64,000 nt of DNA. Origin: Selaginella moellendorffii (Eukaryota; Plantae; Lycopodiophyta). Below the pieces are notes generated by a model. That model did not search any database. It was given only the letters and a program-made list of their open reading frames with translations, and was not told the origin of the DNA. Below, piece by piece: positions 8,301 through 49,492 of this stretch. The stretch lies in the NCBI RefSeq assembly GCF_000143415.4, contig NW_003314276.1, forward strand, positions 1,308,366 through 1,372,365. Direction: 5' to 3'. The position numbers and the translations under genes were made by a program. Each line of letters opens with the position of its first letter. Position 1 is the first letter of the stretch.

Positions 8301-9412
8301 TTCTCATGAACCCACCAACATAGCCTCAAGGTATCACACCTTGGCACATTTGGTGTCTCCACACCATCGGCTCCACGAGCCTACCTCTATGACATTTCCC
8401 CTTCATGTCTAAGTCTTTGCCAAGACCAACACCGCTCTTTCTCATGCCAACCATCCGTTAGCACTGCACCACAGAGGTCACACACAACTTTATGTCAAAG
8501 TTGTTTTCTTCTGGGAACACCTTTCCCATAACTTTAGAATGGCATATTTTGCCATCGATAAGATACCCTCTGTTCTCATCCTTGGATCCTATGATCCCCC
8601 CCCCCCATCCTTTGTGGGGTACAACACACCTCAGTTCAAATGCTTCCATCAGTCCTTTTAGGACCATCCGTTGACTCTACTTGAGTCATCCAGCAGTTTT
8701 GGACTTGGTTAATCCACAGACCCGTAAGGTCCTACTTGTGAGGCACTAGCTCACTGGAATACACTTCTTGCATTCCTGTCCTACTCAAAAGGACTATTTT
8801 CACAAGTGTTACTCCGACACTTGATTTTGTTCTCTGGGGCAACTTTTGCCCCTTAGGACTACTTGTCCATGTGATGAGAACACCAACTCATCCACTTAAT
8901 ACACCCCCAACTCCTTGGGTTGTTGCAGCATTTATTAGAGGTAGCCCTGGCTACCTTTTCAAGGGCTTGAGTCCTCTTCCGTATTTGACCTCCCACGGTC
9001 ATTACTTCTGGTCTCACATTCATGAGCACCAACCTCAACTATATGAGGAAAATCTTGTGACTCTTTTATTGCTTTGGAGTTTTTATCTTTCCCGTGATCC
9101 CAACTGTAGTTGTTTACCACAACTACATTAGCCAGTTTGCTAAGTCAAACGCTCATCTGGATCACATCCTCAACTTTTTTGAGGAAAACCATATACTGTT
9201 CCCAAGATCCCAAAGTCGTTCCATTATTGGCCCTTTTCTATCCACCACCTCGTCTACAAGTTCACACATGAACTGTAATGGAGAGCCATGTCTTCCCGAC
9301 TTGTTACTCCTCAAGGATAGGCCCACTCCTCGGACCTTCCGATGCCAACACTAGTGGTGATATACTTGAGCACCAATAAAAGTCGGACTAAGGAACAGCT
9401 CCGATACCAAGT

Positions 9413-14400: not shown

Positions 14401-15412
14401 CAACCCCATCACAGACGTAGTGATCTTGTGTTTCTCACAGTTTGTCCATTGTAGCTAAAGGTGGCTCTCTCTAAGAAGACACCAAATCTGGAGGATGTAG
14501 TGGTGATTGTCAGTCACCTGTTTCAAGAGGATGGCCTTCTTTGGGACTTCTTGAAGTGCCAGACACCCATCTCATGGCCGTTTTAACCAAGGAAATGAGA
14601 AGAACCTTGACTGTCATGCAAAACATTGTGGATGGGATCACAGAAAATTTGTTTATTTATTTGTTTTTCTGGCCTCACTTTTGCAGCTGCCTGGCATAAG
14701 CAACCCCGAGTGCCAACCCGGTGGGAGGAAAGCTCCAGGGAGACTTTTGAGATGGCTTTGCTTGAGAAACTTAAGTTTGTTAATCCATACACGCTAAAAG
14801 CTCAGATCATCCGGTGGGACACAATGAGCCCCTGAGTCTGCATGGAACCAAAACAATAAACTCACAATGGAAAGCTCAATGGATTCAGCTTTGCACCATT
14901 TGGAAATGGCCAACGGCCTTGCTGTGAGTGTGTGACACAAAAAGCACCACACTGTTTTGATTGAGAGCTCGCAATCGATCAAGAAGAAACCACTTAAAGA
15001 AAAACCGATGCTTTTGCTTGGCTCCTGTTTTAGATACACTCACTTCCAACTCGCTGCCTCTACTTCCGTTTAGTACATACACTATTTTACAATTGAACAT
15101 CAAGTATCATAAGATGGTGGACGACTTACTAGGGTCGAAGCCTCTCCTCATCTCTGCCATTCACGTGCTGGTCGTGGTCGTTGATGTCCTTCACTTACAA
15201 TTCTATGCTTTGGCGTTGCCTCGGTGGTCCGCACGGCTTTAAAATGGTGGGCCCAGATCACATGGCCGGACTGAAAGCACGTGTTTTGACAGAGATAACC
15301 AATCAGGCGCTCTTGATTTTAAAGCACGTGTTTTTCTCTCACATGCTTGACAGGCCTATAAATGTATGCAAGAATTGCTGTGACTTGCCAACATCGAGAA
15401 GTCATTGGAACC

Positions 15413-16198
15413 ATGCTTCTTCGTGCTCTATCGCTCTTTGCATTGTGTTTGCTGGTTTCCGCAGCACCAGCATCACCCCCTCCTCCTGGTTCATGTTCAT
15501 CCGACGCTGACTGCCCGGAGGCATACCCCTGCTGTAGTTCATGGGGAGACTGTGGCAACAAAGCCCCATGGTGTTCGTCGCCTCCTCCACCGCCTCCACC
15601 ATGCAAGTCTCCTTTATATGGTACTAGTGCTGATGGTACTGCCTTCAGTGGAAGTCTTACGAGTACGCCACTGGAGGGGCTACGCATAATCAGCGGTTGT
15701 GTGGTTGATGCCATTCAGTGGAAGTCTTCGGGTTCTTCTTGGACTCAAATGTATGGAACGAACTCCTGTTCAGGATGTTTACCACAGCCGCCTCCGCAAG
15801 CTGGTCTGAGAAGCACATCCTACGAGGTCTTTTTAAGTTAACGTTTTTCTTACTTTCTCAATTTCTTTCTGCAGATCTCTTTGGGCTCGGATGAGTACAT
15901 TTACAAGGTATCGGGTACAACTGGAACAGACAAAACATGCGGTGCTGGTTGGGCGGGAGAAGGTGTTGTTTCGCTGACTGTGCATGTCAAGAACATGAAA
16001 ACTGGTAAAACCAAACCATATGGTCCATTTGGTACTTCGACGAGTGGCACTTCCTTCGAAACAGCACCAGGCAACATAGTCTCGTTCTTTGGATATGCAA
16101 GCCCCAAGTCATATATGAAAGGCATCGGTGTTATCTATTCGACGTGCCCATCCAGTTCTGTTCAGACCACCCCCATGGGGGCATTTAGCATCATTTAA
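15413..16198 (+). CDS. Secreted chimeric lectin: signal peptide + hevein-like chitin-binding domain + Pro linker + jacalin-like domain (exons 15413-15826, 15875-16198)
   Basis: TATAAA about 55 bp upstream; hydrophobic N-terminus; CSSDADCPEAYPCCSSWGDCGNKAPWC; jacalin-type motifs SGCVVDAI, DEYIYKVSG, YGPFG, IVSFFG, IGVIY; GT-AG intron keeps frame. Confidence 0.85.
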
Positions 16199-18153
16199 GG
16201 AGTTGCCAAACTATGGTGCTATGCCAGACTATGTAATAAAGATTTGGTGCTATGCTAAACTATGTAATAAAGATTTTGGTGCTATACCAAATTATGTATT
16301 ATCTGAGCAGCGCGCAGGGCTCCAGAGAATACAAGTCGGACTGCTAGCAAAAATGATCTATCTATCTATATGCTATTTTGAGTGCCCATCCTGAAGCATG
16401 AGACGCATTTTTTGCGTCGCTGTCATCTTCCATCGCCTCCAATGGCGTCTTCACTTCCATGGTTGGGCGGGATCTTGTCTAATTGTTCTTTGCTTCGTCC
16501 TAGGAGGCTATCTAGCCTATCTATGAGGCTAAAGGTGTTGGTTCTTTTCTCATTGAGCTTAACAATGGGACTACATGCCAGATTGACCACAAAATTTTTT
16601 CCTATATCTTGTTCAATTTTCTGGAAATCAATGCAGTATTACTTTTTTTTTTCTTTTATGCCCCTTCTTTTTGTTCACCTAATGGCAGAGTAATATATTC
16701 ATCCTTTACAACAGCCTTTCCCTCATTAGCAATTGGTGTAATTACTTAATACTATGACCAAAACTAAATAATCACATTCAATTAATGGTAACATTTATGG
16801 TGTATAGTATAATTCTTTTTACTTTTACTGCTAATCCTTGAGTTTCTCTAAATTTCTTCTATGAGATGATTATAAGGATGATTTGTATTATTAATTTGAT
16901 CATTTTACAATGATTACTATCTATCATTCTTCAAATGATATTTGGCATTTGCACAAATTTCCCAAATGTTTACAAAGGATAATTTTACAATGATACAATG
17001 TTTTAAGCACAGACACTTCTGCAGATTAAAGTTGTGGGAATACTAAATTAGCACACGATGTGATTATACAAGAACTTTGCTGTAAAATGCTAATCTGTTG
17101 TCTTGAGAGCCACAGCCTCCACCCACATAGTGAAGAAATTTATTGCCAACAAGTAATAGTGGCTACGTAAAGATGCTAGAGATAATGGGCAAGTGTAAAA
17201 TGGACTTGAAAAGGTAATGAACTGAAAGGGAAAATGTTGCTTCAAGGATTGAACTGTTAGCATATGCCTCTATGGCCTTGAAAATAACAGGCCAATAAAA
17301 ACCACCATTGTTGATCCTGCAAAATGGCCTTTATAAAGGTGAAAGACTTTGACTTTAGCTTCTGTCAAGCAGCACAGTCAAGCTGTCAACAAGAAAAATT
17401 CTGAGCCTTGATCTCCAAAGCCCGTTGCCACACCATTGGCAAGTTGTCTGGGGACTCTTGTGATGCAAATTTGACCTTGGTGTCAATGGGTGCACAATAG
17501 ATTTGCTTTTGTCAACTGCCCAGGGTTTGCTGGGCAATTTATACTCTTGGTTCTAGTATGCTCAAGAGTTGATTACATAGGAACTCTAAGGTTGTCAATG
17601 TAAAGTTAAAGGAGTGGTTCATTCTTGATGCAACTTAAAATAAGGGTGACCTTGAGTTCCCTCGTCCACCCATGTGTTGGACCGCTTTGTAGCTTTGCTA
17701 AGATTTGTCAATGCTTATTCCCATTGAGTGGTACACTCTAAGCCGGCAGCATGCTTGGCAAGCCCTGGTCGCTGGCCCTGAGCACTGTGTTGCCCAAGAA
17801 TCTCTGCTTAAACTCATTTCTTGGATTTTCAATGACAAAGCTTCTTTTGTCACACTAATTGTGGCGAGTTTCTTTGGAGTAGCCTTCTGGTCGCTGGAAA
17901 CGATTCGGTATGCCGAGAGCCTCTGTGGCGCCACCTTGAGCAGGTGACGATGTAGAGACAGATTTTCCCTCTCACTTCTCTTGCAACATTGGCAGACGTC
18001 ACAAAGCAAGCTTAAATGATGGAGAAAACCGAGCAGCTCCGGCATTTGATCTGAAAGCTCGTCGCTCTCAAAGACAGGCAAACGTCCTATTGTTGTTCTT
18101 TCTCTACAGTAAAAATTTTGAGCTCAAATGACGAGAGCTGAGTACGTAGGTAG

Positions 18154-18985
18154 CTACTCATTACTGTCCTGCCACGACTCAAGGGCCGCAAAAAACCTCT
18201 GTCAACCGAAGTAGACCCCCTCGATGATAAGAGCAGTCAGGTCCCTGGGCTCGTCGTCATCCTCGCGAGCACTCTCGAAGCACTTGAGGTAGACATCCCG
18301 GTCCACAAACTCGTGGTGGCGGCCAGAAGCAGCGGCAGCAAACAAGACATTGGGAAACACAGCCACGCTGCGATCCAAGTAGGCCAGCATCATCCTCCTG
18401 CATCGCCCATTCCCATCCACAAACGGATGGACGCACTCAAACTTGTAGAAGAATTCCGAGGCCAGCACCAGGAGCTGCTCCACCGTCTTGCAGCTGATTG
18501 TCGTCCGCTGCAGATCCGCGTTGGTCTTGCTCACCAACTTGGACAGCTTCGGCCGGATTGCCCAGGCATCCGCGTAGAAGTGCTGCCTTCCGCTGCTCGA
18601 AGCCTGCGATGTCCGGCCTGCCCGACTCCACCTGAGCTTGTCGTTGTTGACGCTGGGAGCCTCCTCCTGATCCTAGAGCCACCATGTCTTGTTGAATGCT
18701 CGGGACAGGCAGCGGACTTGTTCCAATCTCTCGTCCGGAGCCACCACTTTGTCGTCCAAGTCCACTTGGAGCTGCTCCAGGGCGTGGAGTGTTTCATCCC
18801 GTTCCAGCTCCAGCTTGTTCACCTGGAACAGGAAGTCGGCCATGGCGTCGCACTGCGCGTACACGTCCAGCGCCCATGCTTTGGCATCGCCGTCCAGCGC
18901 CTGGAACCTCTTCGCGTACCCGCAAATGGCGTCCGCCATGCTGCTCGTCGCCGGGGCTCCGTCGCCATCGCACCTCCGCCCATCT
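18154..18985 (-). pseudogene. Fic-domain pseudogene (duplicate of 48193-49134)
   Basis: HPFVDGNGRCRR; several deletions/frameshifts and a TGG>TGA stop at 18202 relative to the intact copy. Confidence 0.9.
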
Positions 18986-19328
18986 TATGCCCTAACCTCA
19001 ACCAACAAGGGCTCCCTTTTATACCCTTTTCATTTTAAAGTTTACAAAAGGTGGCTATGTATAAAGCTTTCTCAAATTTGTATAAACCTATATTCCGAGA
19101 ATATTCCATGGCCCCTCAAAATACAAACAATGTGTAACCATCTTTGTAGTACTTGGTACCTGAGAACCGAACATGCTATCCAGCTGGCCTGTTGAAATCC
19201 CACAAACTCATTTTCACAGCACAGGAAAGTGTTTGTCCATACCTCAAGTATCACTTCAATCATGCTCGAGCCCGCTTCTTCCCCTTGTTTTGCAGCGCAG
19301 AAGCACGAAATCAGCTTGAAATACAAAG

Positions 19329-20835
19329 ATGTCACACCCTGTCCAAAGATCACATTGCCAAGGTGAGAATCTCAACACTCTAGAATCCTCAAGTCTCACC
19401 TCCCGCGAGAATTCCAGGCAACAACAGCCATGGACAAGTTCCTCCAAAGCGTCGACTCGAATCCCCATAGACGAGACGCAGCCGAGCCTTGCTACTCGCT
19501 GCACGAGCCAGGAGAACTCGTCTATGGAACCGCTCTCGTCTTTCACGGATTCGGGCAATTCCACAGTTGCTCGCGGACTACCTGTTTGACAATGGCTTCA
19601 ATGTCTACCAGCCTTGCCTTGCTCGCCACTATCTCGGAAATCCGACTCTAAACTGGCCGTAGGTGACACATCTTAAAGTTCGCTCTTTACTTTCATCTCC
19701 ACCCAGGTTGATCTCAAGCCGGAACTGAAAGAGAAGATCCGGCAAAACTTCCTCAAGGATCCGGTCCTAGCCAAGGAGCTCTATACCTCTGTAAGTCTTC
19801 TGCTATAACGTTTTCATCCTGCTGACAGTCTGCTGGCCTGTGTTCTTCGTGATTGTTGTCCCAAGACACCATGCAGCCAGTTCGCTCCCTTTCCCCCGAA
19901 ATGTCTGATATAATCGCTGCGCTCGACCAAGGTGATCGTAGCCAGGATTTCCAGAGGTCTGTGAGCGCGGCTCTTCACCTCCAAAATGAACTAACCACTT
20001 GGCTGCCAGGTTTTTCGACTCGAGCCACTTGGACTACTTCACGGAAGCCGAGCAGCGACTAGAAGATGTGCATGCTCTGCCAGGCCCGATCTTCGCGATA
20101 GGCATCTCGATGGGAGGTGCCACTGCGTTGCATCTCGCCAACACTTATCCAGACACAATCTCGAAAGTCGTAGCGTACGCCCCGCTCCTGAAGGTAGGAC
20201 GAAACTTAGCCTTCGAAAGACAAGAACCGTGAACAAACTTACTAATGATCGATCGATCTTCTGGCCAGACCATGGATGATTCAAGGAGAGAATTTGCTCT
20301 GGCGATCGGCCCGCTGGACGTGAAAGAAACCGGATGGGAGCCGTCGCTCCAGTTCACAGTGGGATGCCTTGTGGCAATCGACCTGTGTGGGACTCGCGTT
20401 AGCCAATCCAACATAGATAATCTCCCAAAGAAAGTCACTACCTTGCTACTCTTCACGGCAAACGAAGACTCGGCCGACCTTCCAACGCAGGAGAAATTCG
20501 CGCAACGATTAAAATCCATCTCCTCCGGTAGGATGCTTTGATCTTCAACAATGTGGAAAAATTCTCCCGTCGCTACTGTCCCAGATGGAGTGCCACACCT
20601 GCATTACACATATCGCCGCGAGCTGGAAGTCCCGCACGCGATGATCCACCCAAACGAGGTAGGAAATCGAGAAATTCTCGAGAGATTTCTAACCTCTCGC
20701 TTGGCGCAGAGGCCGATCGCGAACAAGCTGTGGAGAAAAATGTACCAGGAGACATTTCGATTCCTGACCGCCGGGAGGGCGCGGTCGATTCGCTGCGCCA
20801 AGACGAAACCCTACCCCAAGTACCATAAACCCTAA
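19329..20835 (+). pseudogene. alpha/beta-hydrolase pseudogene (duplicate of 49493-51019)
   Basis: GISMGG retained; frameshifting deletion near 19560, CAG>TAG near 19659, deletion near 20780. Confidence 0.85.
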
Positions 20836-21080
20836 AACCGCAAGCTTTTATCTCCTCGTGAGAGCAAGCAAACTAAACGCTACGAGCTAGAACTTTGGAT
20901 CATAACAGATAGAAGTTTTTCGTTGTGATCATCTTCTCAAGCTCCTGTTACTTTCAAAAGAACTTAGAACCCTTTGGAACTTGACGCTTGCTCAACCTGC
21001 ATGGAAGAAAGAACGTCGATGAGAACACGAGAAAAGAGAGAACCACCATTGGAACTCGGCATGGATGGTGTGGAGTCGCT

Positions 21081-21636
21081 TCACTGCTCACCATCCGAAG
21101 CTGTGGATTGCTGGCCTTGAGCCTGCAATTGCTGGGCTTGGGTTTGTTGATCCAGCTGCCACTGCTGCTGCTGCTGCTGCTGTGGCAACGCCATGTACTG
21201 CATTGGCGGCCGCTGCTGCTGCGTGTAGAGCACTGGATCCATTGGAATGGCCGGCCTTCCAATCACTCCCCCAGGAATCATGTAGAGTAGCATGTCTGGA
21301 GCTCTGATCGGCAGCACGGATCATGAGACACCCAGCGCCTTGTCCTTGGCATCCTTGCATGGCACGATGTCCACCAGGAAATCAAAGATGTCCGTGCGAG
21401 TGACTGCCGCCGCAATGTCATTCTTCTGGAGCATCTCGCGTGCAGCGTCAGCTCCAGGATGAACATCTTGCATGCCTTGGCAAAGAGCACAGGTGCCTCA
21501 CTTGAGATCATCCTCATGTCCTTGTCTGCCTTCATGATCTTCTTGATGTGCACTAGGGGCAAGCTGTGCATCTTGAAATCCATCATCTCCTAGATATCTT
21601 GCATCTGCCCCACCCAAAAGTCTTGCATTTGCTGCA
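21081..21636 (-). pseudogene. 5'-truncated NF-YC pseudogene
   Basis: Homologous to 51323-51917 ([15 protein letters not shown]); histone-fold deletion; ends abruptly at retroelement sequence. Confidence 0.9.
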
Positions 21637-21699
21637 TCTGTCTTTGACTCTGGAGTAGCAGTTGATGCTATGTAGTTATTGTTGAACAATCAAACTTAA

Positions 21700-22422: not shown

Positions 22423-25400
22423 TGTAAGGAACCAACTCTCGAGGTGTCGTAGGCTAAAAGATCCCCAAAGGCACGACCAAAATGATAAAGAGTTCATCGA
22501 ATGGGACTGAGTTTAACATCGAGTCCAAGACTGACTTTGAGACCGAGTTCAAGATAGAGTTCGGGATCAAGTCGAAGGCCAACTCTGAGACCGAGTTCGA
22601 AACCAAGTTCGAGATCTGAGATTGGGTTCAAGACCGAGTCTAAATATTAATATATGTTGTGGGGTGAAAGCCCAAAGCATGTGTCTCCCAAGGGGGGTAC
22701 AGGGGGTTCCAAAAGTATAGTAAAGATAGTGGGGTTTAGGAATTAATTTTAAAGGAATTTTCTAGTGGTGTTTCTAAATTGACTTGAGGTTGAGACTGGG
22801 GTTTAGGGGCCTTAGGTAGGAGTGAGTATAGACTCGGGTAGTACTAGAGGGGCTACCCAAGAAAGTGCTCAAGAGTAACTCCCACTCCCAAAAGGGAAAT
22901 CAATTGCGGTGGTGGAGTGGTGCCCCACTTAAGTACCTTACGACTCATTGGTCCTCACCCCTTTTTAGGGGCTTGTGCCTTCCTTTCGGGATGGAAATGG
23001 GGGAATAGAGGTACCCATACTTGACTATTAGGCTATGGTGTTTCCCACTGGTGCTCTGAAGCAAGTCTTACACCCAAGGTTTGGGATTTAAAAGGTCCAA
23101 TGATCAAGTCTTGTTATACCAAGGGATGTTAAGAACTTGGAGGCTTGGTGTGCTTGGCTACTTGTGCTTATGGGGATTGTAGCCGAATCTTAAGTCCAGT
23201 CTAACCTAGGGAGGGAGATTGGGAGAGATTTGCGAATCCATAGATGGATTGCTAACACTTTGTTGCTTATGTAGTGAATAGCTGAAATCAAATAGGACCA
23301 AGTAGGAGCTAGTACAATAGGCAAGAACCTTAGCGATGAAACTTAACTAAGGGCAAGGCAGTGTTGGTCAAATAGACAAGGCAAGCTGGCAAATTGGAAA
23401 GGAAAAATTTATGACTTACAATTTGGTATCAGAGCCTTTTCTTTAGTTTTAGTGAAGGATAAAGGCCGATTGCTGGGAGATGGCAAAGATAGGGCATAAA
23501 AGAACCAAGGCGAAGACAAAACCTCCTCCAGAGCTGGAGCCTTCAGTCGAACAAGAATCTATGGATGAGGAATCCTTTACATAAGGAAGACTTTAGTGAA
23601 GAAACTTTTAAATAGGAGTCTAGTGGCAAGGTTCAGTTGTCCAAGGCTTGATTGGACGTTCTAGAAGGACAACTGGCACAAACCAATTCCCTGTTAAAAA
23701 CTCTCATACGCAAGCTAAAACATGATGAGAAGCGGAAGAAAAAGCAAAAGACTGCATATGCTGGTAGCGCAAAAGGCATTGCCCCTTTAGTGGGGACTGA
23801 GGCGGAACCGAACAAAGTCGAACAAACTGAAGTGGAATCAATCCCTCGGGGATGGTCTAAAGTTGAGTTGAGCTCACGAGTTAAGCTCAATTCAACACAA
23901 GTCTGCTCAAGTCAACACAGTCAACTAGAAGTCTTACAAAGGAAATCTAAATTGAGCAAATGAAAGTTCTAGCAAACTTTAAAATATTTAAATACGTAAA
24001 TATCTGAGTTAAAAGTTTTTATAAGATTAAATTGTTTAAAAAAGGCAAAGTTCACAAAAACCTATCTTTTATAAAGTTATATTATTTTATTATGACTACT
24101 GCTATAGCTGTTATATTTTGATTTGACTACTTAATATTTTGAATAATTTTACAGCTGTAGATACTATTCCTTCATTCAGAAGATTTTTTAGGGTTCTTGA
24201 GAAGATGGGAAGCAAGGAAAATACAAGATCTATGAGTAGAAGTTGCAATGGAAAAGAATTTGAGAATGCTAATTTTGTTTTACTACCACAATTTCCATAT
24301 TACACTCGTGGTCCTTATTACCCATCTAGGAATGTAGAGACCACTTGATAAAAATGCTTCTGTTATTTCTAAAACAACAATTTAGAGCAAGAGAAATGAA
24401 GAAATGAATAGCAAGGCGGAAAGCATTAAGAAATTTACTCCATAAAACTTTTTATGACATTTATAATTTACATATTAATTCGTATCAAAAGCTTTGTTGC
24501 TTGCCTATATCGCAATCTTCTCATATAATAAGACCAAGGTATATTTTTGCAGTGAATCCTCATTAAAAGTTTTCGAGAGTTGTTTGTGAATAATAATAAA
24601 AGAAATCGAAATCTTTCAAAAGACTCAAAAGTAAAATCATATCAAAGAATCAACTTTATTTACATTTCCAAGACTGAAAAGCAATTTCACATAAGAGAAT
24701 GGTAGCATGCCAATGTGCTCTGCCACTGAAATATGGTCTATATTTCCTTACAATCTATTTCCCTAGACATTTAGCATGTGTAAAAAAGAATATATGTGTA
24801 GCAAAGTAGGATTTCATCATAATGATAAAGTATGTGTATACATGATAATCTAAAATTTTAGAAGCTCTTATGTTTACAAGCAAGCTATGATTATAAAGCC
24901 CCATTTCCAAGACTGATATTTAAAGAATTTGAGTATTTTGAGTATTATCAGTGTCATAATAAATAAACCTCATTCCCAAGACTAAAACTTAGTATATAAA
25001 CTATTTAGAAAAGTTATAGTCATCATAGTTTTTTTGTTCTTCTTGAGCTCCTTGGAAGTTTCCTTTTGAGGAAATATCTTCCGGCGGATGAAATGGTTCC
25101 GTCCCCAAAATATATTCCAGTTCATCCAACGAAATTAGTTGCCGAAGCGCTCCCTCGCAACTGGTACAAGCATTGGCTATTGCAAAATATGGGGTTTTTA
25201 GGCCACCCTATAGTGGAATGTAAGATCTAGAATTACTTTACTATACTATAGTATTGCCACTATTAAAAGAAAATATATAATAAAATGATATTAATTATAG
25301 GTAACATACTTTGTTCTAGAAAGTGCTATCATATCACATATAACTGTTTACAAAATGTTGAAGGAGGAGATGGCAACACACAAGTGCTACAAAGTGATGG

Positions 25401-25744
25401 TGATAGGTGAGAATGATAATTTGCAATTATGATATCTGACATTGACACTGACATCTGACACTTTCACTGACATCTTACAGTTTTACTGACATTTAACACT
25501 TTCACAAACATCTAATATATAACAAGCTTTTCATTTTATGTAAGGATGCAATTAACTTTCTTCTACCTCATCATCAACATATTGATTTCTTTTATGCTTC
25601 CTCCTATATTAGTATTGTGGGGAAGATTCACTTTGCATATGTTGAGCCATGGCTTTGCATAGTCAGGGAGACTTCCAAAGCCTCCAATTCTAGAAACTCC
25701 AAGTGACTGTGATATATAAATAGAATTAAACATATATTGAAATT

Positions 25745-28171
25745 TTAATAAACATAATTCCTTGAGGTTGGAAATCCTCTGAACCGGCGTTTAAAGAAAT
25801 GATGTTCTTCAATAGCAAACACCAACCTACCAAAGTCATGTGCTGCCTCCACTATAGAACCACTACCTACTATGTAATCAATCACAGCACCATCTGATGG
25901 GCAATAGAGCTCAAGTAAGACTTGTATCGCCAATAGAGTTCGAAATCTATACCCTGGAAACGTCTTGCGGATTTGCTCATCCACAAGGTTGGGTATGAAC
26001 TGTTGTACCCAGACAAAACATGTGTTGTATGTTTGCTATCACGAAACCCATCATGTGTGTTTCTGCAGAAAGCATGATAGGTCTATATCATAATCTAGAA
26101 AATAAAAATGTTTAGAAATTAGATAAAAATATATAATACATACTCACCTTTTCAAGCTTCCCTTGGACGCCCCTCATATTGATGCTAATAGGATCCATAA
26201 TGCATCTGGAAGAAAATGCCTTGAAATGCACTTCTGCTACGCATGTCATAAGCTTATACATCCAGTTGGGGTCGTTTGGTAGGATGAAGATGACATGGCC
26301 AATTTCGAGCATAAGTGTTTTGGACAAGAGGAATGCATTGTGCATGTGGTCAGGTGTGAGAAAGTTCCAATCCTCAACTTTCCCATCAATATCTGAAAGA
26401 CCATCTGGAAAGTCAAAGAGAATGAAGTCCGCAACTGGGAGCAAGGGCCTTTGTATCTTTCGGCACCAACGGTTGNNNNNNNNNNNNNNNNNNNNNNNNN
26501 NNNNNNNNNNNNNNNNNNNNNNNNNNNNNNNNNNNNNNNNNNNNNNNNNNNNNNNNNNNNNNNNNNNNNNNNNNNNNNNNNNNNNNNNNNNNNNNNNNNN
26601 NNNNNNNNNNNNNNNNNNNNNNNNNNNNNNNNNNNNNNNNNNNNNNNNNNNNNNNNNNNNNNNNNNNNNNNNNNNNNNNNNNNNNNNNNNNNNNNNNNNN
26701 NNNNNNNNNNNNNNNNNNNNNNNNNNNNNNNNNNNNNNNNNNNNNNNNNNNNNNNNNNNNNNNNNNNNNNNNNNNNNNNNNNNNNNNNNNNNNNNNNNNN
26801 NNNNNNNNNNNNNNNNNNNNNNNNNNNNNNNNNNNNNNNNNNACCTGATCCGGATCTTGGTTGTTTGATGGTTGAACTGAAGCCTGATCCTAGCTGTCTG
26901 GTGGTGGAATGCGAACTTGATCTGGAGCTTTCTCATCTTCGTCTCTATCATCACTGGCATTGCCATCATTGTTAGTATTGACAACTTCCTCGTGATCTAG
27001 TGTACAAGTCTCCTTCCCTAGGAGCTCCAACTCCCAAGGGCATTCTATCTTCCGTGCCTTTGGAACTCTTACAAACATTGTTCGGTACATTCCTCCATCC
27101 TTTACGCCTTTTGTAACAAGTTGAGTGAAAACTAGTGCCTCAAATGGCATGCCTCTATATCAAATATATATGTAAACAATATATATTTAAAAAAAGTCTT
27201 AGAAATCATATTATACCTATAAGTTGCATGTCGCATGAAATAAGGCTGACTATATTGGCAATCATAAATTGTTGTGCTTGTAGACTTCTCTGGCAACCAC
27301 CCCTTTTCGATCCCTTCCAATGATGTATTGATATAGGTGTTGAAAGACATGAATGTGCCATCTAGATCGTCACCAATGTGTGGTGCCAAGAACTTCTCAC
27401 CTTCACTTATAGTTTGCGTGATGTAGACAGCCCTTCTCATTATGTTCTTAAATAGTTCTAACAGTCCTTTCTCTTTGTTCATCAAGCAGACATTGAGGAA
27501 CTCTAGAGTCTCTATCTATTGCTTATATAGAAGTTTCAATTTTGCGATATTGTAAATTATGTCATCTAGAGTTTTGTTCACAGCAAAAGTAACATATGCA
27601 TAATTGAGAAAAATGAAGTGTGATAAGAAACTTACATTCATGAGAAGAAGCTTTGGCTCTAGTCTCTAGCCACTCCTTTGGCCTATGATTGTCTGCAATG
27701 CATACTAGTTTCTTCAACTTTGAAGACTTTGCATGCTGAATTTTATGCTCAATTTATACAAACTTAGTCGAGAGCTCTTCCCGACTCTTCTCCGAATATA
27801 CAAGTTCGTAAGCATCTTGCTTGACCTTCACCAAAGGCTAAAAACCAAAACAATTAAAAGGAGCCCTTATAAAATGAAAGGGAAAGACATACCTTGCACC
27901 ACATAACGAGCATAAAACTGATTGGGTTGTTGAACCAAATTGTACCGCCATTTCGAGTGCGTGAGTGCCAAACAAATGTTGCGAAATCATCATCATAATG
28001 TTGGCAGATGTCATCCTCACTTAAAAGTGAATGTGCCAAAATGAATGTGAAGTAAGAGTCAGTTGTTATCTTCTCATCCTCTTGTAGTTCAAGTGGAGAA
28101 GTCATGCTAGTGTCGGTGCCGAATTCACCAACTCCAGCTCCAACTTCAGCTCCAACTTCAGCAATATTCAA
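25745..28171 (-). pseudogene. Divergent paralog of the methyltransferase-like gene (ParB domain not seen; spans assembly gap)
   Basis: PISFMLVMWCK|PLVKVKQDAY, KKLVCIAD..KEWL, GWLP, ADFILFDFPDGLS (26403-26414), FPGYR...LLELYCPSDGAVIDYIVGSGSIVEAAHDFGRLVFAIEE; colinear with copy A, sharing at least the K|P intron position. Confidence 0.8.
26476..26842. other. Assembly gap (367 N)
   Basis: Run of N. Confidence 1.
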
Positions 28172-28238
28172 AGTCGTTAGTAATGCTTTCCAGTTTTTGC
28201 GCCTCTTAATTGATGTGCACTTGTTTTTGTATAAGCTT

Positions 28239-28990
28239 ATGAGTGAGCTTCCATCCTCCTATAATGGCAACATTTTCTTTGAGCTACCACCACTTGTTAG
28301 CAGTATAGGTTCCAAATGGAAGGGGATGGAAACCAAGCAGGATGTCCACAATTGGTGCAAAATCAAGACCATATACTTCCAACATTTTGAAAGCATAGTG
28401 TCTATAGTTTATTGTGGCGAGCATTTAAATTGTGTGGATGAAGCATGCAATCAAAACCATTGTAGAAATTTTATATTTTTTGAAGGGTCTACAGTCAATC
28501 CTCCAGCCTGTGACACCATTTCTGTTGAATTCAAGTATCCATTCTGCAAAAATGCTCCTCTATGTTATGCTATTTACGAGGCCAAGATGTATTATTTTCT
28601 TCCATGGGATGGAGTGGCTGGAAGAGCTACAGTGTATGTTGGCACACATGCATCTAATGCAAGAAGGGTTACAAAGGAGTTCTCTCAACCGTTTCAAAAA
28701 TGTTGTGTAGGAAGAGACTATAAGAAACTCATTTACAACTCCAAAGCATGTTCAAAAGACTGTCTTCAAGGATTTTATCGCAAACACCTTACTCAATCCA
28801 AGTTGCCAAAAGACTCAACTAAAAAAGACTAGCTTGCGGGACTTATTACGAGGAGTACAACTTGCTACTAGCCTAAGGAGGTACATTCGTTATATTTCAT
28901 ACATTATAATATATCTTTTTATTACATTTTATTGTTTAGGATAAAATCTTGGATATGTGAATCTTGAGAGGGTGGTTTATGTGTGGTTTA
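28239..28990 (+). pseudogene. Truncated Cys/His-rich WRKY/GCM1-like zinc-finger gene, probable transposase N-terminus
   Basis: FFELPP..GM...DVHNWCKIKT..YCGEHLNCVDEAC..FCKNAPLC..AKMYY..RATVYVGTH, followed by a frameshift; no catalytic DDE region visible. Confidence 0.5.
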
Positions 28991-29809
28991 GTTATGCTAT
29001 GCAATGGGATAGTTATTGCATGTCCTATCCCTTAAACCCTGCAAAGAAAGATTGTGAGAGTTAAAATTATCAACACTAGAACCCACAGATATTAGTGTGT
29101 ATTTCCCTCTTTTTGAATGAAAGTATGAATGAAGATCCATAAATTCTAGACAGTATGCTATGACAAACCCCTTAAGAATGTATTCTAGAAAAGAACCAAG
29201 TCTTTCTTTTATATATAATAAGCTTACATCAACAGTTAGTATTTTTTTCCTTTCAAACGGTTATATAGCTTTATATAGAATCTTATTTCAAAATTAATAA
29301 TTTTTTAATTCTGACAAACTTGACATTTACTAGCCAGAAAGCACAAAGTACAGATTTAAGGAAGTGACAAGAATACTTTTTTTACAAACATCTTATTTTA
29401 TATTCTGAAAAATATCCCTATTATGGCATGTAGTAAATATTTAAATTGTTAGAACAAGAAGTATTGTTTAGAATATTTTTATCTATATAATATGTAGAGA
29501 GTTATGAAATTATTAAATTTGCCATAACCTTAATATTTTAAAGTTTTTAATGTTTGTATTAAATTTCAATTGAAACTTTAGTTCAACTCTTCAACTCATG
29601 AGCTTAAGTATAGTCCATGCTCAATTCCTCAAGTAGTTCCTAAGTACAAACCAAAGCCCCCACTGGTCTTCAAGGGAGTGAATGACTATAAAGTGGTAGA
29701 GGATTAATTTTACAATATGGAGGATTACTTTTGAGCATTTGTCTCTCTATTATTTCCTCTTATGTTTTTATTTTATTCTTTTATTCCCTTTTCCGATCCC
29801 TTCGACAGT

Positions 29810-30790: not shown

Positions 30791-33410
30791 ACTCCTTTTC
30801 CTTCTTTACTCTCTTCTCATATTTTTTATGAACTTGTTATTTTAGTATTTGTGGACTTTTTAGATGAGGATACTATGGATCAGTACTATTGCACTAAGCC
30901 TTTTTTTTCTTTGAAAAGCTACTTAAACTGTCTAGTTTGGCATACATTGCCAATAAACTCAAGTTCAAATTGTTTAGCCAACAATTTTTTGAGAAAAATC
31001 CAAAAGAAGAAGGAATGGAGTTTGTTTAATATAGAAAATATAATTACTTACTCTAGAATTCTTTCATTTTGAGCAAGTTCTCTCTTGGGCTTTTAAGGGA
31101 TACATTTTTCAATAGTGTATCACAATTTTTCTAAACATACATAAATAGGAAAATTGGGCACTTGTAACTTTTGTCTTCAACTCCAACTTAAAAAGAGCTA
31201 AAGCCAGCTTTAGTGAAGAACAAATTAAGGAATTATTCACCCAAATCTTATGAGGCTTTGACAGATGCAAAATCATAATTAGAACATTATGCTATCTCAA
31301 AGCTTTAATCCAAGGTACTTTAGCTTGGACAACTACTTAAACATGGTTTGAGAGTAGATTTATCCCGAATTTAAGTCTCCCACATATATTGCAAGAGTCT
31401 ATGAGACTTGAACAAGATTCATAAGTAAAAAATTTAGAAGTGCTTATCATGAACCACTCTAACTGTTTGAACCATTCTACACTTAAGGCTCATCTCTTAT
31501 ACATAAAAAGCTTACTCAAATATTTGAGACTCAAAAATTTGTCATACAAGCTTTGTATTGACCATTAATGCCTATTGGCAAGAGGCTAGAGAAAAATTTA
31601 CCTTGAAGAGTAGTTTTTGTCTAGATTTGAAGCAAAGTCTTTCACAAATTAGCTATCATATGCTTAAAAAGCTACCTAATATAATTCCACAAGTAAATTA
31701 ATCAGAATAGGCTATCGTGCACTAGACAATTTAACCCTTATGTTGATTCTATAAAGCAATTTCACGGAATGATCTCTATGCCTCGTTCAAATTAATCCCT
31801 AGTGTTGATCTATTTAAAAAAGGTTTGCCTAAAATTTGCCAAGAGTAATAGGCCACTCTTTCTAATTTCACAGTTGTAAAGACAAAGTTAATTGTAAGCC
31901 AGAGGGTAAGACCCACTGTGAAGCAAACAAACTATTCTAGAATTGACTCTCACGTGCTACAGACCTTTCACTAAATTAATCATAAACACAAACAAAAAGG
32001 GAAGGTCCTTTTGCGCACCTAGATGGAGAGATTGAGGATTGTCAGAAGATATATTTTACTTATGGACCCAGACAGAAGTTGGTTAATCCCAACTAGGCAA
32101 AAGTATAAGAAAACAAAAATTAAACTATCTTGTGTGCCTAATTAAGCCAACGAATGATAAATTTAACGAAATTTCTTAAATAACTCAATAAATTGAGATA
32201 TTTGACAATATTCTGCTCAAGGTATACAAAAGTTTGACTCTTGGTACCTTTACTATTGTTAAAGAAGGTGTGATAATACACCTAGATTGCTTTGTAGGTA
32301 CATAGTGTAAACGAAATCTATACTAGTTGCAAAAAAAAACATTTTCTGTCAAATTTTAATGAGCACAATGGTAATTACAAGAATAGCAATAAACACCGCT
32401 ATCATATATCCATCCTTTTTTGAAATTAAAGGAAAGGACCCACAATTGTATATTGAGCAATACATATAAGCAATTAAACTCAATCAAACAAATGGGCAAA
32501 CAAAATTTTTTTTCCACTATACGTTAAAAAACAAAGCCAAAAATTGGTACTATGACAATGATGTTAAAAGTCTTGGCATATTTAATGAGCAAATAAAATT
32601 TTTCTTTAAAGCGTTCTCCATGGAAACAAACCCAGGAGAAAACTATAATGAGTTGCAAAAGCTTCATCAAGGAAATTCTAAGACAATCTAGGAATATACA
32701 ATTCAATTCAATAAGTGTTATAAACATTCTAAAGACTTAATATTATGCCTATATATACAGGGCCTTAAAAACATTTATCGTGAATATGTGATAAAGAGAG
32801 TTTATATAGATTTTGATGACTTGAAAAAAGCCATGATTGCCTACCAAGATTTCATAAAACAATATGACATAGTAGATATAGTAAAATCAGACGAAAAAAT
32901 GACTCCTATAAACAAAGAAACTAATCATCTAAAAAAGCCTTAAATTGCAAATTAATCTCAAATAAGGGATTTGGTGCACAAGATGCAAAAATGAAAATCA
33001 TAACAAGAGAGAATGCAAACTCCAATTGATCAAGTGCCAAATTTATGAAAAAGAATGGATTCAGCTAAGGAATGTAGAATCTTGTTTAAACAACTAAGAA
33101 GCTAAACTGAGTTGATAAAACAACACATAAGCAAAGCTATCCACCTAACAATAGAAATTATTGTAGGAGGAACAATTACAATGATAAAATTGAAGTGCCA
33201 AACATGAATACCCATGTGCTGAAAGGCAAGAGCACCATCGGGATTATCCGTCTAAGGGTAATTTTTGAGATTATCCACCTAGTCATGAGGAAAATAAGCC
33301 TAAAGATTATAATTGGCATAGAGAATACAATCAATCTAGAGGTTACAATAGGCCTAGATATTATGAAAAGCTAAAAGAGTATGATCAAGCTAAGACTCCT
33401 ACTTGGTATT

Positions 33411-36400
33411 TGTGAGACACAAAATCCCTAGGCCCCAAAGTGGAGCCGAAAGGGTGCCACGTGGTAGTGGCCGAAGCAAAAGCCAAACAAGCATAACACG
33501 TTTGGACTAAAAGGCTCCGACTTGAAAGGTCGAGAGCGGGAATGGAACTCCCAATGGAGTGCTCAAGGAACGAGCATGAAGCGAGCAATAAGCGAGGCTC
33601 AAAAAAGGGACCCAAAAAGACCAACACATCACACGTGGAAGTGTCCGAGATGGAGTCCAAGATGGACCCGAGTTGGAGTCCGAGATGGAGTCCAAGGTGG
33701 ACCTGACATGGAGTCCGAGATGGACACGAGTTGGAGTCTGAGGTGGAGTCCGAGATGGAGTCCGAGATGGACCGAGATGGAGTCCGAGAAGGACCCGAGA
33801 TGGAGTCCGAGATGGACCGAGATGGAGTCCGAGATGGAGTCTAAGATGGACTCGAGATGGAATCTGAGATGGAGTCCGAGATGGACCCGAGATGGAGTCC
33901 GAGGTCAAGACCGAGACCAGGACTGAGACCGAGACCGGGACCGAGACCGAGACCGGGACAGAGACCGAGGCCGAGGCCAAGACCGAGCCTGAGCCCGAGT
34001 CCGAGTCCGAGTCCGAGTCTAAGTCCGAGTTTGAGTCTGAGAGGGTGAAAGCCCAAAGCGTTCGTCTCCCAGACCCTGGGGGGTTTGGTGAGCTCCAAAA
34101 GTATAGTAAGGGGTAGGGTTGCAGTGGAGCTAGTTTGGCCAGGAAAGGCTAGTTTGGCCCAAGAAAGGCCAGACCCAGTGTTGGGTGATGAACTGACCAC
34201 TGGGAAGTCCAAGACTAGAGTGAATACAGACCGACAAGCGTGGTAGCTTGGTGAAGTGTTCAAGAGCCAGCTCTAGTTCCCCCGGGAGATCGACTAGCCG
34301 ATGCTCCCAGTCCAAGTGTGGGTGGCACTACCTACTTGGATACCTGGTGTGGCTCAACGGAACCTCACTCTAAGCCCATAGCTAGAGCACCTAAAGGCAG
34401 AAGGTGGGGAGAGTACCCACGGGGCTTGCGTAGGGCCACGGTGTTCCGAAATGTTGTCCCAAAGTCCCAAATGGGGGAAAGGAGGAGGAATAGTCCTCTA
34501 GTGTAGTGACTACGGATATGGTCACATAGTGAGGAAGTCCCAGAGGACAATGGGACTTAGTGGCCGGGTCTGCGGGCCTTGATCTAGTGGCAGTGTTGGT
34601 GAACATGGCCATGGACGGAAGAGGGACTTGGCAAGAACTGACAAAGGGATGTTGGGGAAGGCTATTCCCATGTCTGTGGGCATCCTAAGGATGCTAAGGA
34701 GTGGATCTGGGATGACCATTTGTGGACGGATGCCCCAGTCTTGGAGAGACGAGATTGTGATGCAAGTGGTATTGGACCACCAGTGCAATAAAGGTGAATG
34801 GGCATGGCTTTAGTGTAACGGGCCGATATGTCAATGGTACCTTTGGGTGTCGGTCTTGGGACTGGACACATGGAGCACTTGGACCAAGTGCAAGGGATGA
34901 GTGGCATGGATGCCATTCTCGGGACTAGCAGGTCCCAAGTCCTGAATTGGACTTAAGGAGGTTGTGAATGAGACTCCTCCAAGTGGGCAGAGGTGTGGTT
35001 AAGTGACTAAAGTAGAATGGAAAATTTAGTCGCTTACAACTTTATATCCGAGCTATTCCTTAGTCTGACTTTTATTGGTGGCCAAATATATCACCACTTG
35101 TATTGGAATTGGAAAGTCCTAAATATGGACCTATCCTTGAGGAGTAGCATGTCGAGAGGACATGGCTCTCCACTCAAGTTCATGTGTGAACTTGTGCACA
35201 ATGTGGTGGATGGAAAAGGGCCAGTAAGGGGACGACTTTGGGATCTTGGGAATAGTATAAGGGTTTCCTTAGAGAGCTAAGGATGTGATCCAGATGAGTG
35301 TTTGATGCAGCAAACGGGTTAATGTAGTTGTGGTAAACAACTATAGTTGGGATCATGGGAAAGATGCAGACTCCAAAAAAATAAAGGAGTCACAAGATTA
35401 CCCTTATATAGTTGAGGCTGGTATTCATAAATTTCAGATCGGAATTGGTGACCATGGGAGGTCAAATACAGAAGAGGACACAAGTCCTCGAAATGGTAGC
35501 CGAGGCTACCTCTAATAAATGCTGGAACAACCCAAGGAGTTGGGGGTGTACTTAGAGGATGAGTTGGTATACTCATCACATGAACAAGTGGTTCTAAGCG
35601 GCAAAAGGTTGCCCCAAGAGAACAAATCAAATGTTGGAGTAACACTTGCAAAAATGGTCCTTGTGAGTAGGATCTGAATACAAGAAGTTGTATTCTAGTG
35701 AGCTAGCATCTCAAAGGTAGGACCTCACGGGTCGTCGGATGATAAAGTCCAAAAAGCTGGATAACTCAAATACGAGTCAAGGAATAATCCTAAGGGATTG
35801 GTTGAAGCATTTGGACTGAGGTGTATGGTGCCCCCTGAGGTATGGGAAGGATCATAAGATCCAAGTATGAGAATATTAAGTATCTCATTGATGGCAGAAT
35901 GTGCCATACTAAAGTTGTGGGAAAGATGTTCTTAGAAGAAAGCAACTTTGGCCTAGAGTTGGGTGCAAACACTATGGTGCAGTGCTAACGGATAGTTAGT
36001 ATGAGAAGCAACCATATTGGTCTTAGCAAAGACCTAGACATTAATAAGTAGTGTCATAAAGATAGGCTCGTAGGCTAATAGTGTGAAGACACCAAATGTG
36101 CCAAGGTGTGATACCTTGAGGTTATGTTGGTGGGTTCATAAGAACCCCTTGCCAAAGGGAATCCCAACGGAAATGGGAATGGCATAGCCTAAGCTGGAAG
36201 GCATGTGGTAGAGTGTGGTGACTAAAACAATGATGGAGGTGTGGAAGCACCAGCAATGAGTTATAGGACTTGACAACTATGAGGCAACTAAGCAAAAGGT
36301 GCAAGATAATTTGTGAAACTGGAAGAAGGTAACTACCTAAGACATCTTAATGGTATAAAGAAGTTAGATATACCCTTATGCAGAATAAATTACTTATGTT

Positions 36401-39400
36401 GTGATATAGTAAGTCAATGTCGTAAAAGGGAATGCTCATTATCTAAGAGGCCATCATTTGGGACACCCAAACACTCTAGAACACCAGAATGTGGTGTTTG
36501 ATGTTGCCAGGGCAATGGATAAGGCCCAAGGGACTAAGTCCCTAGCAAATGATGGATAGAAGGTGCTATCCAAATGTCCAAGGTGGCGGAGATGGGAGAA
36601 GACTGTCTACCCAAATTGGACAAAGCCAAAAATGGAATTTAGGCAAGGCTAGTGATGGGCATATAAGGGCCCATAAGCAATAATGTTAATCCCGGTGTGT
36701 GGGATTATAAGGTGAGTATATCTGGATTGAGGAACCACTCCCTAGGTTGTCGAGTAGGTTCATCCCCAAGAATACTTGCTAAGGCATGGTAGAAAGTGCA
36801 AAGCTATCCTAGGCGAATAACCGAAGGAAAGGTGTGAAGCCAAAAGCAAGTAGTAAGGGGATAAAACCAAACCATAGGAATCGAAGAGCATAATCAAAGG
36901 TGTTTATGCTAGTTGGGAGTGGAGGATCAAGTGGGTGCTCGAGTATGTTGTTACTAGCAACCATGATGCCATGGAGAGTCTAAAATATGGAATTATCCAT
37001 GTTAGACTATATGGCAACTAAAAAGCTTGCGAAAAGGGAGGCCTTAACAAGCTAAGGGACAAAGTTCCTTCGAAGTTCCTAAAGATGATGCTAGGTAATT
37101 TAGTACCTAGAAAGGCCAAGTGTAAATGGTTCCTAGAGCACACAAAATTAGAGTGGCGCAGCAGAAGCGTGGTTTTGAAGCTGGTCATGAAGCAAGGCTA
37201 TTAAAGTTGGGGAAGTAGTTCTCGAGTGTTCAAAGAGAGGGCTTTGAACGAAAGTCGATGGTTAAGGACTTTCATGCTTATGCATGAACCATGTTACAAT
37301 GGCCGGATGTAGCGCACCTTATATCTCTCCCCTTAAGCCAACTGGAAAAGGGGCAATTGCTTGATGAGAGAGCCCTTAGTGGCTATTTTATCCCCATCTA
37401 TCTCCTAAGGTTCCAAGGATCCACGGTGACAATATATCCAAATCTCATCCCATGATCACATGCGCTACACTCACCCCCCCTTCAGAGATGTCAATGTCCT
37501 CATTGACTATTGACTAACAACCCCTACTGAGCCAAGGGGAACCAACACCTCCATTTCCGCACTCAATCTACCAATCCTTCCATTGTGTAGACCAGCTATT
37601 TCATATGAGGCAACTAGTCATCCACCCGTACCGCAGTCCCACGGTGGATACCTTCGTCCGTGGATACTCCACACAAGAGGAAGGACGTACGCATGGATGC
37701 CCAATACGTACGATTTCAAATTTAGAGGTAGGAATATACCTTGCTCAAGGGTATATTATACTTTTAAGTAGCCACTAATCAATGGGAATCGAACCCGTGC
37801 CATTTGCTCTGATACCAACTATAGCGCACCTTATCTCTCTCCCCTTAAGCCAACTGGAAAAGGGGCAATTGCTTGATGAGAGAGCCCTTAGTGGCTATTT
37901 TATCCCCATCTATCTCCTAAGGTTCCAAGGATCCACGGTGACAATATATCCAAATCTCATCCCATGATCACATGCGCTACACCGGATGACTTACTAAGTG
38001 AGATTGGCAAGTGTGGATAATGGAGCAACAATTAATGGATAAAAGCAAAAGACTAGTGGCCAAGTGTGGGCTATGGAGTTCATTGGAAGGAATCCAAATG
38101 GCAAAGTTAGGCATGGAACATTAATGTGTTGGATGCTAACGGATTGTGAGAAAGGAAGTGTGCTTCCAAGGATGGATTCCCAAATGCTCCAAGTTGGCAA
38201 AGGTGAAAGCTCCAAAGGAGGGAGCAGCGAAGTAGCCAAAAGATAAGGCCATGGATAGCTCTAGCACAACTTACGATGGCTGGAACTTGGTGCCAAAAGC
38301 AACATAAAATAGAAAGGAGGACGATGGCACCCTCAAATGGGGAGCTTCCTAGGATGGGAACTGAAGTTGCACAATATGTTCAATGAAAGGTGTCAAAGAC
38401 ACCAAAGAAATTGACTTCGAGAAGTCAAAATTAAAAGTTCCAAGGTGAATTGGTTATGTCAATAGAAGTTGGGATTACTCGAGAATGAGTAGTGGGGTTA
38501 AGCTAGAGGACGGGTCTCTAATGGGTTTGGAGAGAACCACCTGAGGTGGTCAAATGAGTCTCTATGTTAGAGACACTATGCTCCTTAGAGGTTGGACAAG
38601 GCATGGCAAGCCTTCGGTGTCAAACCATTGACAAATATTGGCTAAGTGTCAAGGATGGTGAAGGTAATACATGCTAGTGTTACTTTATAAAACGGTTTAT
38701 CGTTCGATGAGGACATGGAACTTCGTCTATGGGTGGTGGAGTTGTGAGACACAAAATCCCTAGGCCCCAAAGTGGAGCCGAAAGGGTGCCACGTGGTAGT
38801 GGCCGAAGCAAAAGCCAAACGAGCGTAACACGTTTTGACTAAAAGGCTCCGACTTGAAAGGTCGAGAGCGGGAGTGGAACTCCCAACGGAGTGCTCAAGG
38901 AATGAGCATGAAGCGAGCAATAAGCGAAGCTCCAAAAAGGGACCCAAAAGGACCAACACATCATACGTGGAAGTGTCCGAGATGGAGTCCAAAATGGACC
39001 CGAGTTGGAGTCCGAGATGGAGTTTCGAGGTGGACCCGACATGGAGTCCGAGATGGAGTCCGAGATGGACCCGAGTTGGAGTCCGAGATGGAGTCCGAGG
39101 TGGACCCGAGATGGAGTCTGAGATGGACCCGAGTTGGAGTTCGAGGTGGAGTCCGAGATGAAGTCCGAGATGGAGTCCAAGGTGGACCCGAGATGGAGTC
39201 TGAGATGGACCCGAGTTGGAGTCCAAGGTGGAGTTCGAGATGGAGTCCGAGATGGACTGACATGGAGTCTGAGATGGAGTCTGAGAAGGACCCGAGATGG
39301 AGTCCAAGATGGACCCTAGATGGAGTCCGAGATGGACCGAGATGGAGTCCGAGAAGGACCCGAGATGGAGTCTAAAATGGACCCGAGATGGAGTCCGAGA

Positions 39401-49134: not shown

Positions 49135-49492
49135 CTGTAAGCCCTAACCAACAAGGGCTCCATGTTATACCCTTTTCATTTTAAGGTGGCTATGTATAAA
49201 GCTTTCTCAAATTTGTGTAAACCTATATTCCGAGAATATTCCAAGGCCCCTCAAAATATGCAATATGAGAGCCTAAACACTGTGTAACCATTTTCATGCA
49301 TGGATATTTGTAGTACTTGGTACCTGAGAACCGAACATGCTATCCAGCTGGCCTGTTGAAATCATTTTCACAGCACAGGAAAGTGTTTGTCCATACCCCA
49401 AGTGTCACTTTAATCATGCCGGTTGCAGCTCGAGCCCGCTTCTTCCCCTTGTTTTGCGGCGCAGAAGCACGAAATCAGCTTGAAATACAAAG

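Follow-up and report, generated by a model that had tools for sequence, protein, structure and literature searches.

Element B is a 5775-base insertion at positions 23848-29622 of a 64,000-nucleotide stretch of the Selaginella moellendorffii genome (contig NW_003314276.1, positions 1,308,366 to 1,372,365 of the forward strand; hereafter the window), and it carries the remains of a gene resembling DNA methyltransferases (MTases). We identify B, with a probability of about 0.8, as a non-autonomous copy, with internal sequence deleted and with mutational decay, from a cut-and-paste DNA transposon family of this species that has two genes and terminal inverted repeats (TIRs). It was inserted by an 8-bp staggered cut into one copy of a high-copy retrotransposon. 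Since then it has lost the middle of the element, i.e., the ParB-like part of the MTase-like gene, an array of palindromes and most of a transposase gene, and has picked up changes of the C-to-T type as well as at least one stop codon.

Insertion site and empty sites

The host of the insertion is a decayed, high-copy long terminal repeat (LTR) retrotransposon, and reverse transcriptase-like remnants of it lie within 300 bp downstream of B. The left junction reads ...GAATCAATCCCTC up to the boundary and GGGGATGGTCTAAAGTTGAGTTGAGCTCACGAG... from 23848 onward; the right junction reads ...CTCATGAGCTTAAGTATAGTCCATGCTC up to 29622 and AATTCCTCAAGTAG... beyond it. The flanks of B are as follows:

23840-23847: left copy of the target-site duplication (TSD), AATCCCTC; the single octamer of uninterrupted host copies also reads AATCCCTC
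29623-29630: right copy of the TSD, AATTCCTC, with one C>T difference from the left copy

The two octamers are thus identical at seven of eight positions, and the C>T difference in the right one is in line with the C>T decay of B described below. As an empty-site test, contigs assembled from public runs of the same organism were compared with 23740-29720. Three of them (X1) join 23843 to 29627 with four ambiguous letters, which equals a joint between 23847 and 29631 and leaves out 5783 bases (5775 + 8), as predicted for the excision of B. Further contigs connect 23847 to 29638 or 29669 via diverged host sequence, and in one X3 contig 98 letters resembling the left flank stand immediately before 29627. 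These contigs stem from other copies of the very abundant host repeat and are therefore paralogous empty sites, with one octamer AATCCCTC. Together with the matching octamers they bear out the 8-bp TSD with one mismatch that had been read from the window in the original prediction. A second copy of the gag-like host part, and hence an empty site, was sought within the window and none was found.

The original prediction had further held that excision of B restores the gag frame of the host. Upon excision the left open reading frame (ORF) does run on for 25 codons and the other two host frames hit stops within 4 codons; this is a weak argument when taken alone, and the gag identity of the ORF is plausible but unproven.

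Termini and other copies of the family

The termini of B, and that of a relative in the same window, element A, are:

23848-23880, plus strand: TIR at the gene-downstream end of B (GGGG-type), followed by subterminal TTGAC-like repeats to about 23925
29589-29622, minus strand: TIR at the transposase-side end of B (GAGC-type), reverse complement GAGCATGG...TTAAGCTCATGAG
14375-14407, minus strand: right terminus of A (GGGG-type), followed by ATCACAGA

The ends of B are short imperfect inverted repeats, weak yet significant. The left end aligns to the reverse complement of the right end, at equal offset from both ends and with 7 of 10 bases identical from base 1, with a local score of 21, a value reached by 6 of 2000 shuffles (12.2 +/- 2.2). 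The similarity between the left end of B and the reverse complement of the right end of A is far stronger, with 18 exact bases and a score of 47 that none of 2000 shuffles attained. Both the TIRs of B and the match of its left terminus to A, as claimed from the window alone, accordingly stood up to shuffling.

Using proteins homologous to the product of B's gene, we retrieved other loci, three of which have termini of B's type around the same gene:

L003 (GL377758.1), 7163-13808: inner element with both termini
L005 (GL377575.1), 5441-13046: near-complete element with both termini
L004: GGGG-type end at 11887

Recurrence of the termini beyond the window, on which the original prediction had staked its case, was thereby found. 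The family has termini of about 33 bp and of two types, GGGGWTGG..TTGAGYTGAGCTCACGAG and GAGCMTGG..GAGCTCATGAG. The motif GGGG(A/T)TGG stands at base 1 of the left end of B, the right end of A, L003 13808 and L005 13046, and the transposase-side ends of L003 and L005 begin GAGCC/AAGCT..TGGGTAGG..GAGCTCATGAG. The right end of B shares this GAGCTCATGAG variant with the L003 inner (7163) and L005 (5441) ends, and the offset agrees too; the two ends can therefore be told apart, and each is conserved from one subfamily to another.

The flanks of L005 repeat ATCAGCTT and ATCAGCTC (7/8 identical), and the inner element of L003 has AAGGAGAA(G) on both flanks, which makes 8 or 9 bp. This L003 element (7154-13817 with its flanks) is a family member lodged inside the coding sequence of another member (VMKEKE/KEKAYISQ); an uninterrupted paralogue reads VMKEKAYISQ, so the target site is clean.

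A complete element is about 7.6 kb long and consists of a TIR, a transposase-like gene, the accessory (MTase-like) gene and a second TIR, with the two genes transcribed divergently and outward, the accessory gene toward the GGGG-type terminus. Both the L003 pieces and the remnant in B are colinear with the two-gene layout of L005. In A-type copies about seven 84-bp palindromic units lie between the two genes; in A they occupy 729-1317, upstream of the ParB-like region, with GAAGATCGGTTCG..CGAACCAATCTTC nested in TTCCCTTGGC..GCCAAGGGAA. A similar array is seen at L003 4800-5260 and none in B. The accessory protein may bind to these palindromes. B had been put forward as the copy that defines the element, and it does fix the ends; it is not, however, the full element, as the ParB-like part and most of the transposase-like gene are missing from it.

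The accessory gene and its product

The features of the accessory gene in B are:

25745-28171, minus strand: MTase-like pseudogene without the ParB-like part, colinear with the gene of A and with the intact homologues P0001 and P0005
25745-25996, minus strand: motif-I exon, matching PF01555 positions 171-216 (E 0.0018)
26148-26474, minus strand: motif-IV-like exon
26476-26842: assembly gap inside the gene, 367 N estimated
27754-27756, minus strand: in-frame TAA
25430-25513: 19-bp tandem array of 4.4 copies (TGACATCTGACACTTTCAC), downstream of the stop codon of the gene

B lacks the stretch that precedes residue 30 or so of P0001, and with it the DGNHR region. The DNA of A and B can be aligned at the termini only, and their proteins have diverged deeply, with 44% identity between A and B in the last exon and about 30% between A-type copies and B in the motif-IV-like exon. 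The junctions VWAK/PIVK in A and MWCK/PLVK in B are both bounded by GT..AG, and three exon junctions, at about P0001 residues 44, 232 and 505, coincide in A, B and a third, genic copy (see below). The original description of the gene as a colinear paralog of low identity with a shared intron is thus confirmed, with 30-44% identity in the two best exons and three common intron positions instead of one. Continuity across the gap is also supported: its flanks share one strand and keep the order of the intact homologue (P0001 residues 244-315 before and 410-507 after it), and the roughly 94 missing residues plus an intron fit the estimated 367 N. The ORFs listed across 26476-26842 are artefacts of the N; contig depth in the gap is zero, with one X3 contig entering it by 145 nt from 26843.

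The AT-rich DNA that separates the stop codon of B's gene from the terminus (23881-25744) is 1.9 kb long; in A the distance is 0.46 kb. Its length takes several values among related contigs, and the segment may be an old nested insert or additional subterminal repeats. The length of the 19-bp array also differs among them (joints 25453->25545 and others).

Searching all ORFs of A and B against Pfam recovered only a weak PF01555 match. Across the family, the last exon matches PF01555 positions 171-217, the SAM-binding motif-I region, in four of five members (best E 2.9e-4), at 17-19 bits and hence under the gathering threshold of 26.7. For a direct comparison, a true PF01555 methylase was picked by a pattern scan of prokaryotic genomes; in hhalign the family profile matched it with 93% probability over PPDG-(A/I)V-(L/V)-D-x-x-AG-x-G. 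PDB profile searches gave only sub-threshold matches to methyltransferase motif I, and no profile match was obtained for the motif-IV-like exon. In that exon F-D-x-P-D-G is invariant in five copies, and A's own copy reads D-L-H-D-G. The catalytic signature (D/N/S)PP(Y/F/W) is absent, the DPPY of the beta class being replaced by D-x-P-D-G. Judged by these motifs, the accessory protein is probably MTase-like without being a classical catalyst. The resemblance to beta-class (PF01555) N6/N4 DNA methylases lies in the C-terminal region of the protein. The ParB label for its N-terminal region derives from a single motif, DGNHR.

All homologues among 1.84 billion representative proteins come from S. 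moellendorffii (assembly GCA_000143415.2), one of them (P0002) being a close paralogue of element A. Word-indexed searches with P0001 and with the ParB-like region returned no homologue outside Selaginella, and scans of metagenomes and viruses with the conserved exons returned no relative.

The transposase-like gene

The second gene, absent from the original prediction, makes this family a two-gene element. In B about 230 codons of it are retained:

28203-28880, plus strand: remnant of the transposase-like gene, N-terminal Cys/His-rich part, directed away from the MTase-like gene

The plus-strand ORF 28104-28832 of B resembles L003 3505-4110 and L005 8516-7933 with 46-50% identity (tblastx). 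In L005 this Cys/His-rich part opens a 3.4-kb minus-strand gene that goes on with a DDE-like core, recognizable by the motifs WIYFNH..GW..HMYD and FRGFMA..VFGG..C-x2-H-like. The gene ends in a SWIM finger (CxC...CxH), which is intact in L003 7367-7975 and deleted in B itself. The Pfam SWIM model scores the L003 region at 13.7 bits (cut-off 19.6), and the ESM Atlas feature matches of this region to SWIM clusters score 0.93-0.94 with 185-190 features in common.

Other searches were negative or uninformative. No Pfam domain was found in the 28203-28880 remnant of B, and the Pfam CxC models did not match the Cys/His-rich ORF that is conserved in B, L003 and L005. The KDZ catalytic domain PF18758 had no match on stop-free fragments of L005 and L003, in which the core is broken by stops, and at E up to 1-5 neither PF10551 (MULE) nor WRKY/FAR1 models matched the short, decayed fragments scanned (B 28104-28829, L003 3355-4050 and those of L005). 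ESM Atlas scores for the B plus-strand ORF and the L005 DDE-like fragment (0.51 and 0.85) were uninformative. A word-indexed search with the L003 Cys/His ORF found no homologue outside Selaginella. We also considered a WRKY/GCM1-like label for 28239-28990; it finds no backing in Pfam, and the ORF is the N-terminal part of the longer transposase-like gene.

Decay of B and an intact genic copy

Thousands of contig pieces match B at 90-99% identity, from which we take the B subfamily to be multicopy. Where they differ, the related contigs mostly have G/C and the window A/T. The CpG observed/expected ratio is 0.38 in B and 0.31-0.66 in element copies, as against 1.03 in the genic copy. The A/T bias and the CpG depletion suggest that the subfamily, multicopy and silenced, has decayed through C>T changes driven by methylation.

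The genic copy is an intact MTase-like copy without termini, seen in the two haplotypes of one locus (L001 10001-13177; L002 10001-12870). It has a GC content of 0.49 and is separated by 116 bp from the host gene before it and by 350 bp from the one after it, its neighbours in both haplotypes being ribosomal L29/PH_SMPa and Sina-ZnF genes. Current annotation divides it in two, LOC112341316 and LOC9661604. Two further features, an insertion of about 8 kb and a partial tandem duplicate, are present in haplotype L002. The genic copy is nearer to A and to B than A and B are to each other, and the data are compatible with either direction: the cargo may stem from it, or it may be a domesticated copy.

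Cargo or captured passenger

The original prediction had taken the MTase-like gene to be ancient, stable cargo of a transposon lineage rather than a one-off capture. Stability is borne out: in two deeply diverged subfamilies the gene has shared introns, adjoins the GGGG-type terminus and points the same way, which argues for a stable inherited component and against the capture of a gene by one copy. Antiquity is not; all homologues found come from one species. The gene is likewise not private to one copy, but the TIR-less L001/L002 leaves room for both a single capture of a host gene and a domestication.

The alternative that survives best is transduplication in the manner of Pack-MULEs, in which the host gene at L001/L002 would have been taken up once, with its introns, and carried as a functionless passenger by A and B. 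Consistent with it are an intact, TIR-less genic copy amid ordinary genes in both haplotypes, with the base composition and CpG ratio given above, the introns common to all three lineages and the greater similarity of the genic copy to A and B than of A to B. Fragments captured by Pack-MULEs are, however, usually partial and short-lived, whereas this gene has remained complete, with its place and orientation unchanged, in subfamilies that can no longer be aligned at the DNA level except at the termini; the palindrome array goes with it in A-type copies, and no homologue outside Selaginella marks it as an old host gene. We therefore regard transduplication as unlikely, though it deserves to be taken seriously.

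Superfamily and comparison with known systems

The original prediction had left the superfamily among MULE, hAT and KDZ/Zisupton. This choice can now be narrowed: the SWIM finger argues against hAT and, together with the 8-bp TSD, fits Zisupton/KDZ or MULE. Zisupton/KDZ fits best and we give it about even odds, followed by the MULE lineage as a possible but clearly less favoured assignment, either membership being putative.

Zisupton elements combine a CxC cluster, a KDZ transposase and a SWIM finger with an 8-bp TSD (bioRxiv 10.1101/2024.08.15.608186; PMC12730594). With the Zisupton/KDZ elements of fish, fungi and algae the Selaginella family shares the 8-bp TSD, the TIRs, the C-terminal SWIM finger and the presence within the element of a second gene whose product is of a DNA-modification type; its N-terminal Cys/His-rich part may correspond to their Cys cluster. 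In fungi, KDZ elements and others contain genes for TET/JBP dioxygenases (PMC12730594). The Selaginella cargo, in contrast, is methylase-like, the host is a lycophyte, and the decayed fragments match neither KDZ nor CxC models of Pfam.

MULEs (MuDR, Jittery and VANDAL, the last with its anti-silencing gene VANC) resemble the Selaginella family in having a DDE core followed by a SWIM finger, a divergent second gene, a habit of gene capture and TSDs that can be 8-9 bp long. MULE TSDs are typically at least 9 bp, and the TIRs of plant MULEs are usually long. In the Selaginella family the TSD is 8 (+/-1) bp and the TIRs are about 33 bp long, and the Pfam MULE and FAR1/WRKY models gave no match on the fragments.

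The 8-bp TSD and the short TIRs would also suit hAT. The termini, however, are GGGG/GAGC and not the YARNG usual in hAT, the product of the transposase-like gene has a SWIM finger at its C-terminus, and neither a BED finger nor hATC was found with Pfam on the stop-free fragments, the decayed core not being scannable as a whole; a hAT affiliation is thus very unlikely. Sola was also considered and rejected, as its TSD is reportedly 4 bp (with a DDD transposase), which conflicts with the 8 bp of B and L005.

As for the cargo, red-algal Plavaka, Zisupton and Mutator elements have been described with PAG2 (PF01555 + SET) and PAG3 (ParB-like + 2-oxoglutarate oxygenase) genes by tandem inverted repeats (bioRxiv 10.1101/2025.02.11.637652). 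By description these are similar to the Selaginella family in having PF01555-type and ParB-like parts on DNA transposons and palindromes beside the gene (as in A), and unlike it in that the Selaginella family has both parts in one protein, no SET or oxygenase domain and a motif IV of the form D-x-P-D-G. ParB-linked methylases and their transfers to eukaryotes have been described (PMC4738411). The phage and plasmid ParB-methyltransferases, with a ParB nuclease-like N-terminus and PF01555, agree with the Selaginella protein in domain order and in a beta-class layout, with motif IV preceding motif I; the similarity is confined to the motif-I region, DPPY is absent from the Selaginella protein and its gene has spliceosomal introns. 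DNA methyltransferases are also carried by dinoflagellate and charophyte retrotransposons (PMC5890265). Literature searches found no report of this Selaginella family or of a land-plant transposon with similar cargo.

Mobility and function

As B keeps only the N-terminal remnant of the transposase-like gene and no array, it could have moved only in trans. We infer that it was mobilized by a family transposase recognizing the termini of about 33 bp together with the subterminal TTGAC repeats. The accessory protein would most likely bind the palindromic repeats of its own element and S-adenosylmethionine (SAM), though the D-x-P-D-G in motif IV means that it may be no classical methylase. Our best guess at its role, a tentative one, is that it would mark the element or shield it from host silencing.

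Several observations weigh against our identification of B. The TSD of B alone can be read as 8-10 bp, an ambiguity of 1-2 bp: because TC stands before both octamers, it may reach 9-10 bp, and we favour 8 bp because only then do the TIRs align from base 1. The TSD of L003 is similarly ambiguous by about 1 bp. No intact transposase was found among the recovered copies, and Pfam KDZ_trans, MULE, FAR1/WRKY and hAT models did not match the stop-free fragments, the stop-broken core not being scannable whole. A ParB domain (PF02195) was not detected in Pfam, PDB-profile or homologue searches and so has no statistical support. AlphaFold2 models from shallow alignments were too poor to help, with predicted local distance difference test (pLDDT) values of 47 for P0001 and 37 for P0007; Foldseek found nothing significant with them, and we do not count the PF01555 methylase 9c3u in fourth place (E 0.085). 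Finally, all known copies of the family are from one species.

That B is a rearrangement or assembly artefact whose ends are similar by chance might be suspected from its assembly gap, the weakness of its own TIRs and the paralogous origin and short sides of the contigs, but it is hardly credible when independent contigs show the exact predicted empty site, the same two terminus types bound the same gene at L003 and L005, each with its own flank duplication, and the 18-nt match to A would be expected 0.06 times by chance even if 3 mismatches were allowed.

Other repeats in the window

Within 2867-11478, an LTR retrotransposon (2872-11473, with TG..CA ends and a 5-bp TSD, ACAGG) is nested in an intron of the gene of A. 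Its LTRs contain long arrays of 12- and 23-nt repeats, and a second, inverted copy of this retrotransposon lies at 33400-40800, with 85-92% identity to 2866-10300. Two copies of a segment of about 7 kb, 87-99% identical and 30 kb from each other, lie at 15013-21640 and 45015-51922, which may reflect a segmental duplication or an assembly effect.

Implications

B itself is a dead deletion derivative, and its value lies in fixing the ends and the TSD of the element. The family would extend the theme of DNA-modification cargo from fungi and red algae to a vascular plant, and the three states in which one gene is met here (element-borne, decayed and possibly domesticated) allow a test of silencing escape and of host recruitment. 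A more speculative reading, which we consider improbable on present data, is that the accessory protein is a self-recognition device whose ParB-like end would bind the element's own palindromes and whose methylase-derived end would mark it or shield it from silencing, with LOC112341316 + LOC9661604 as its domesticated form. If true, land plants would have in it an equivalent of the red-algal PAG genes and of the TET/JBP genes that fungal KDZ elements carry.

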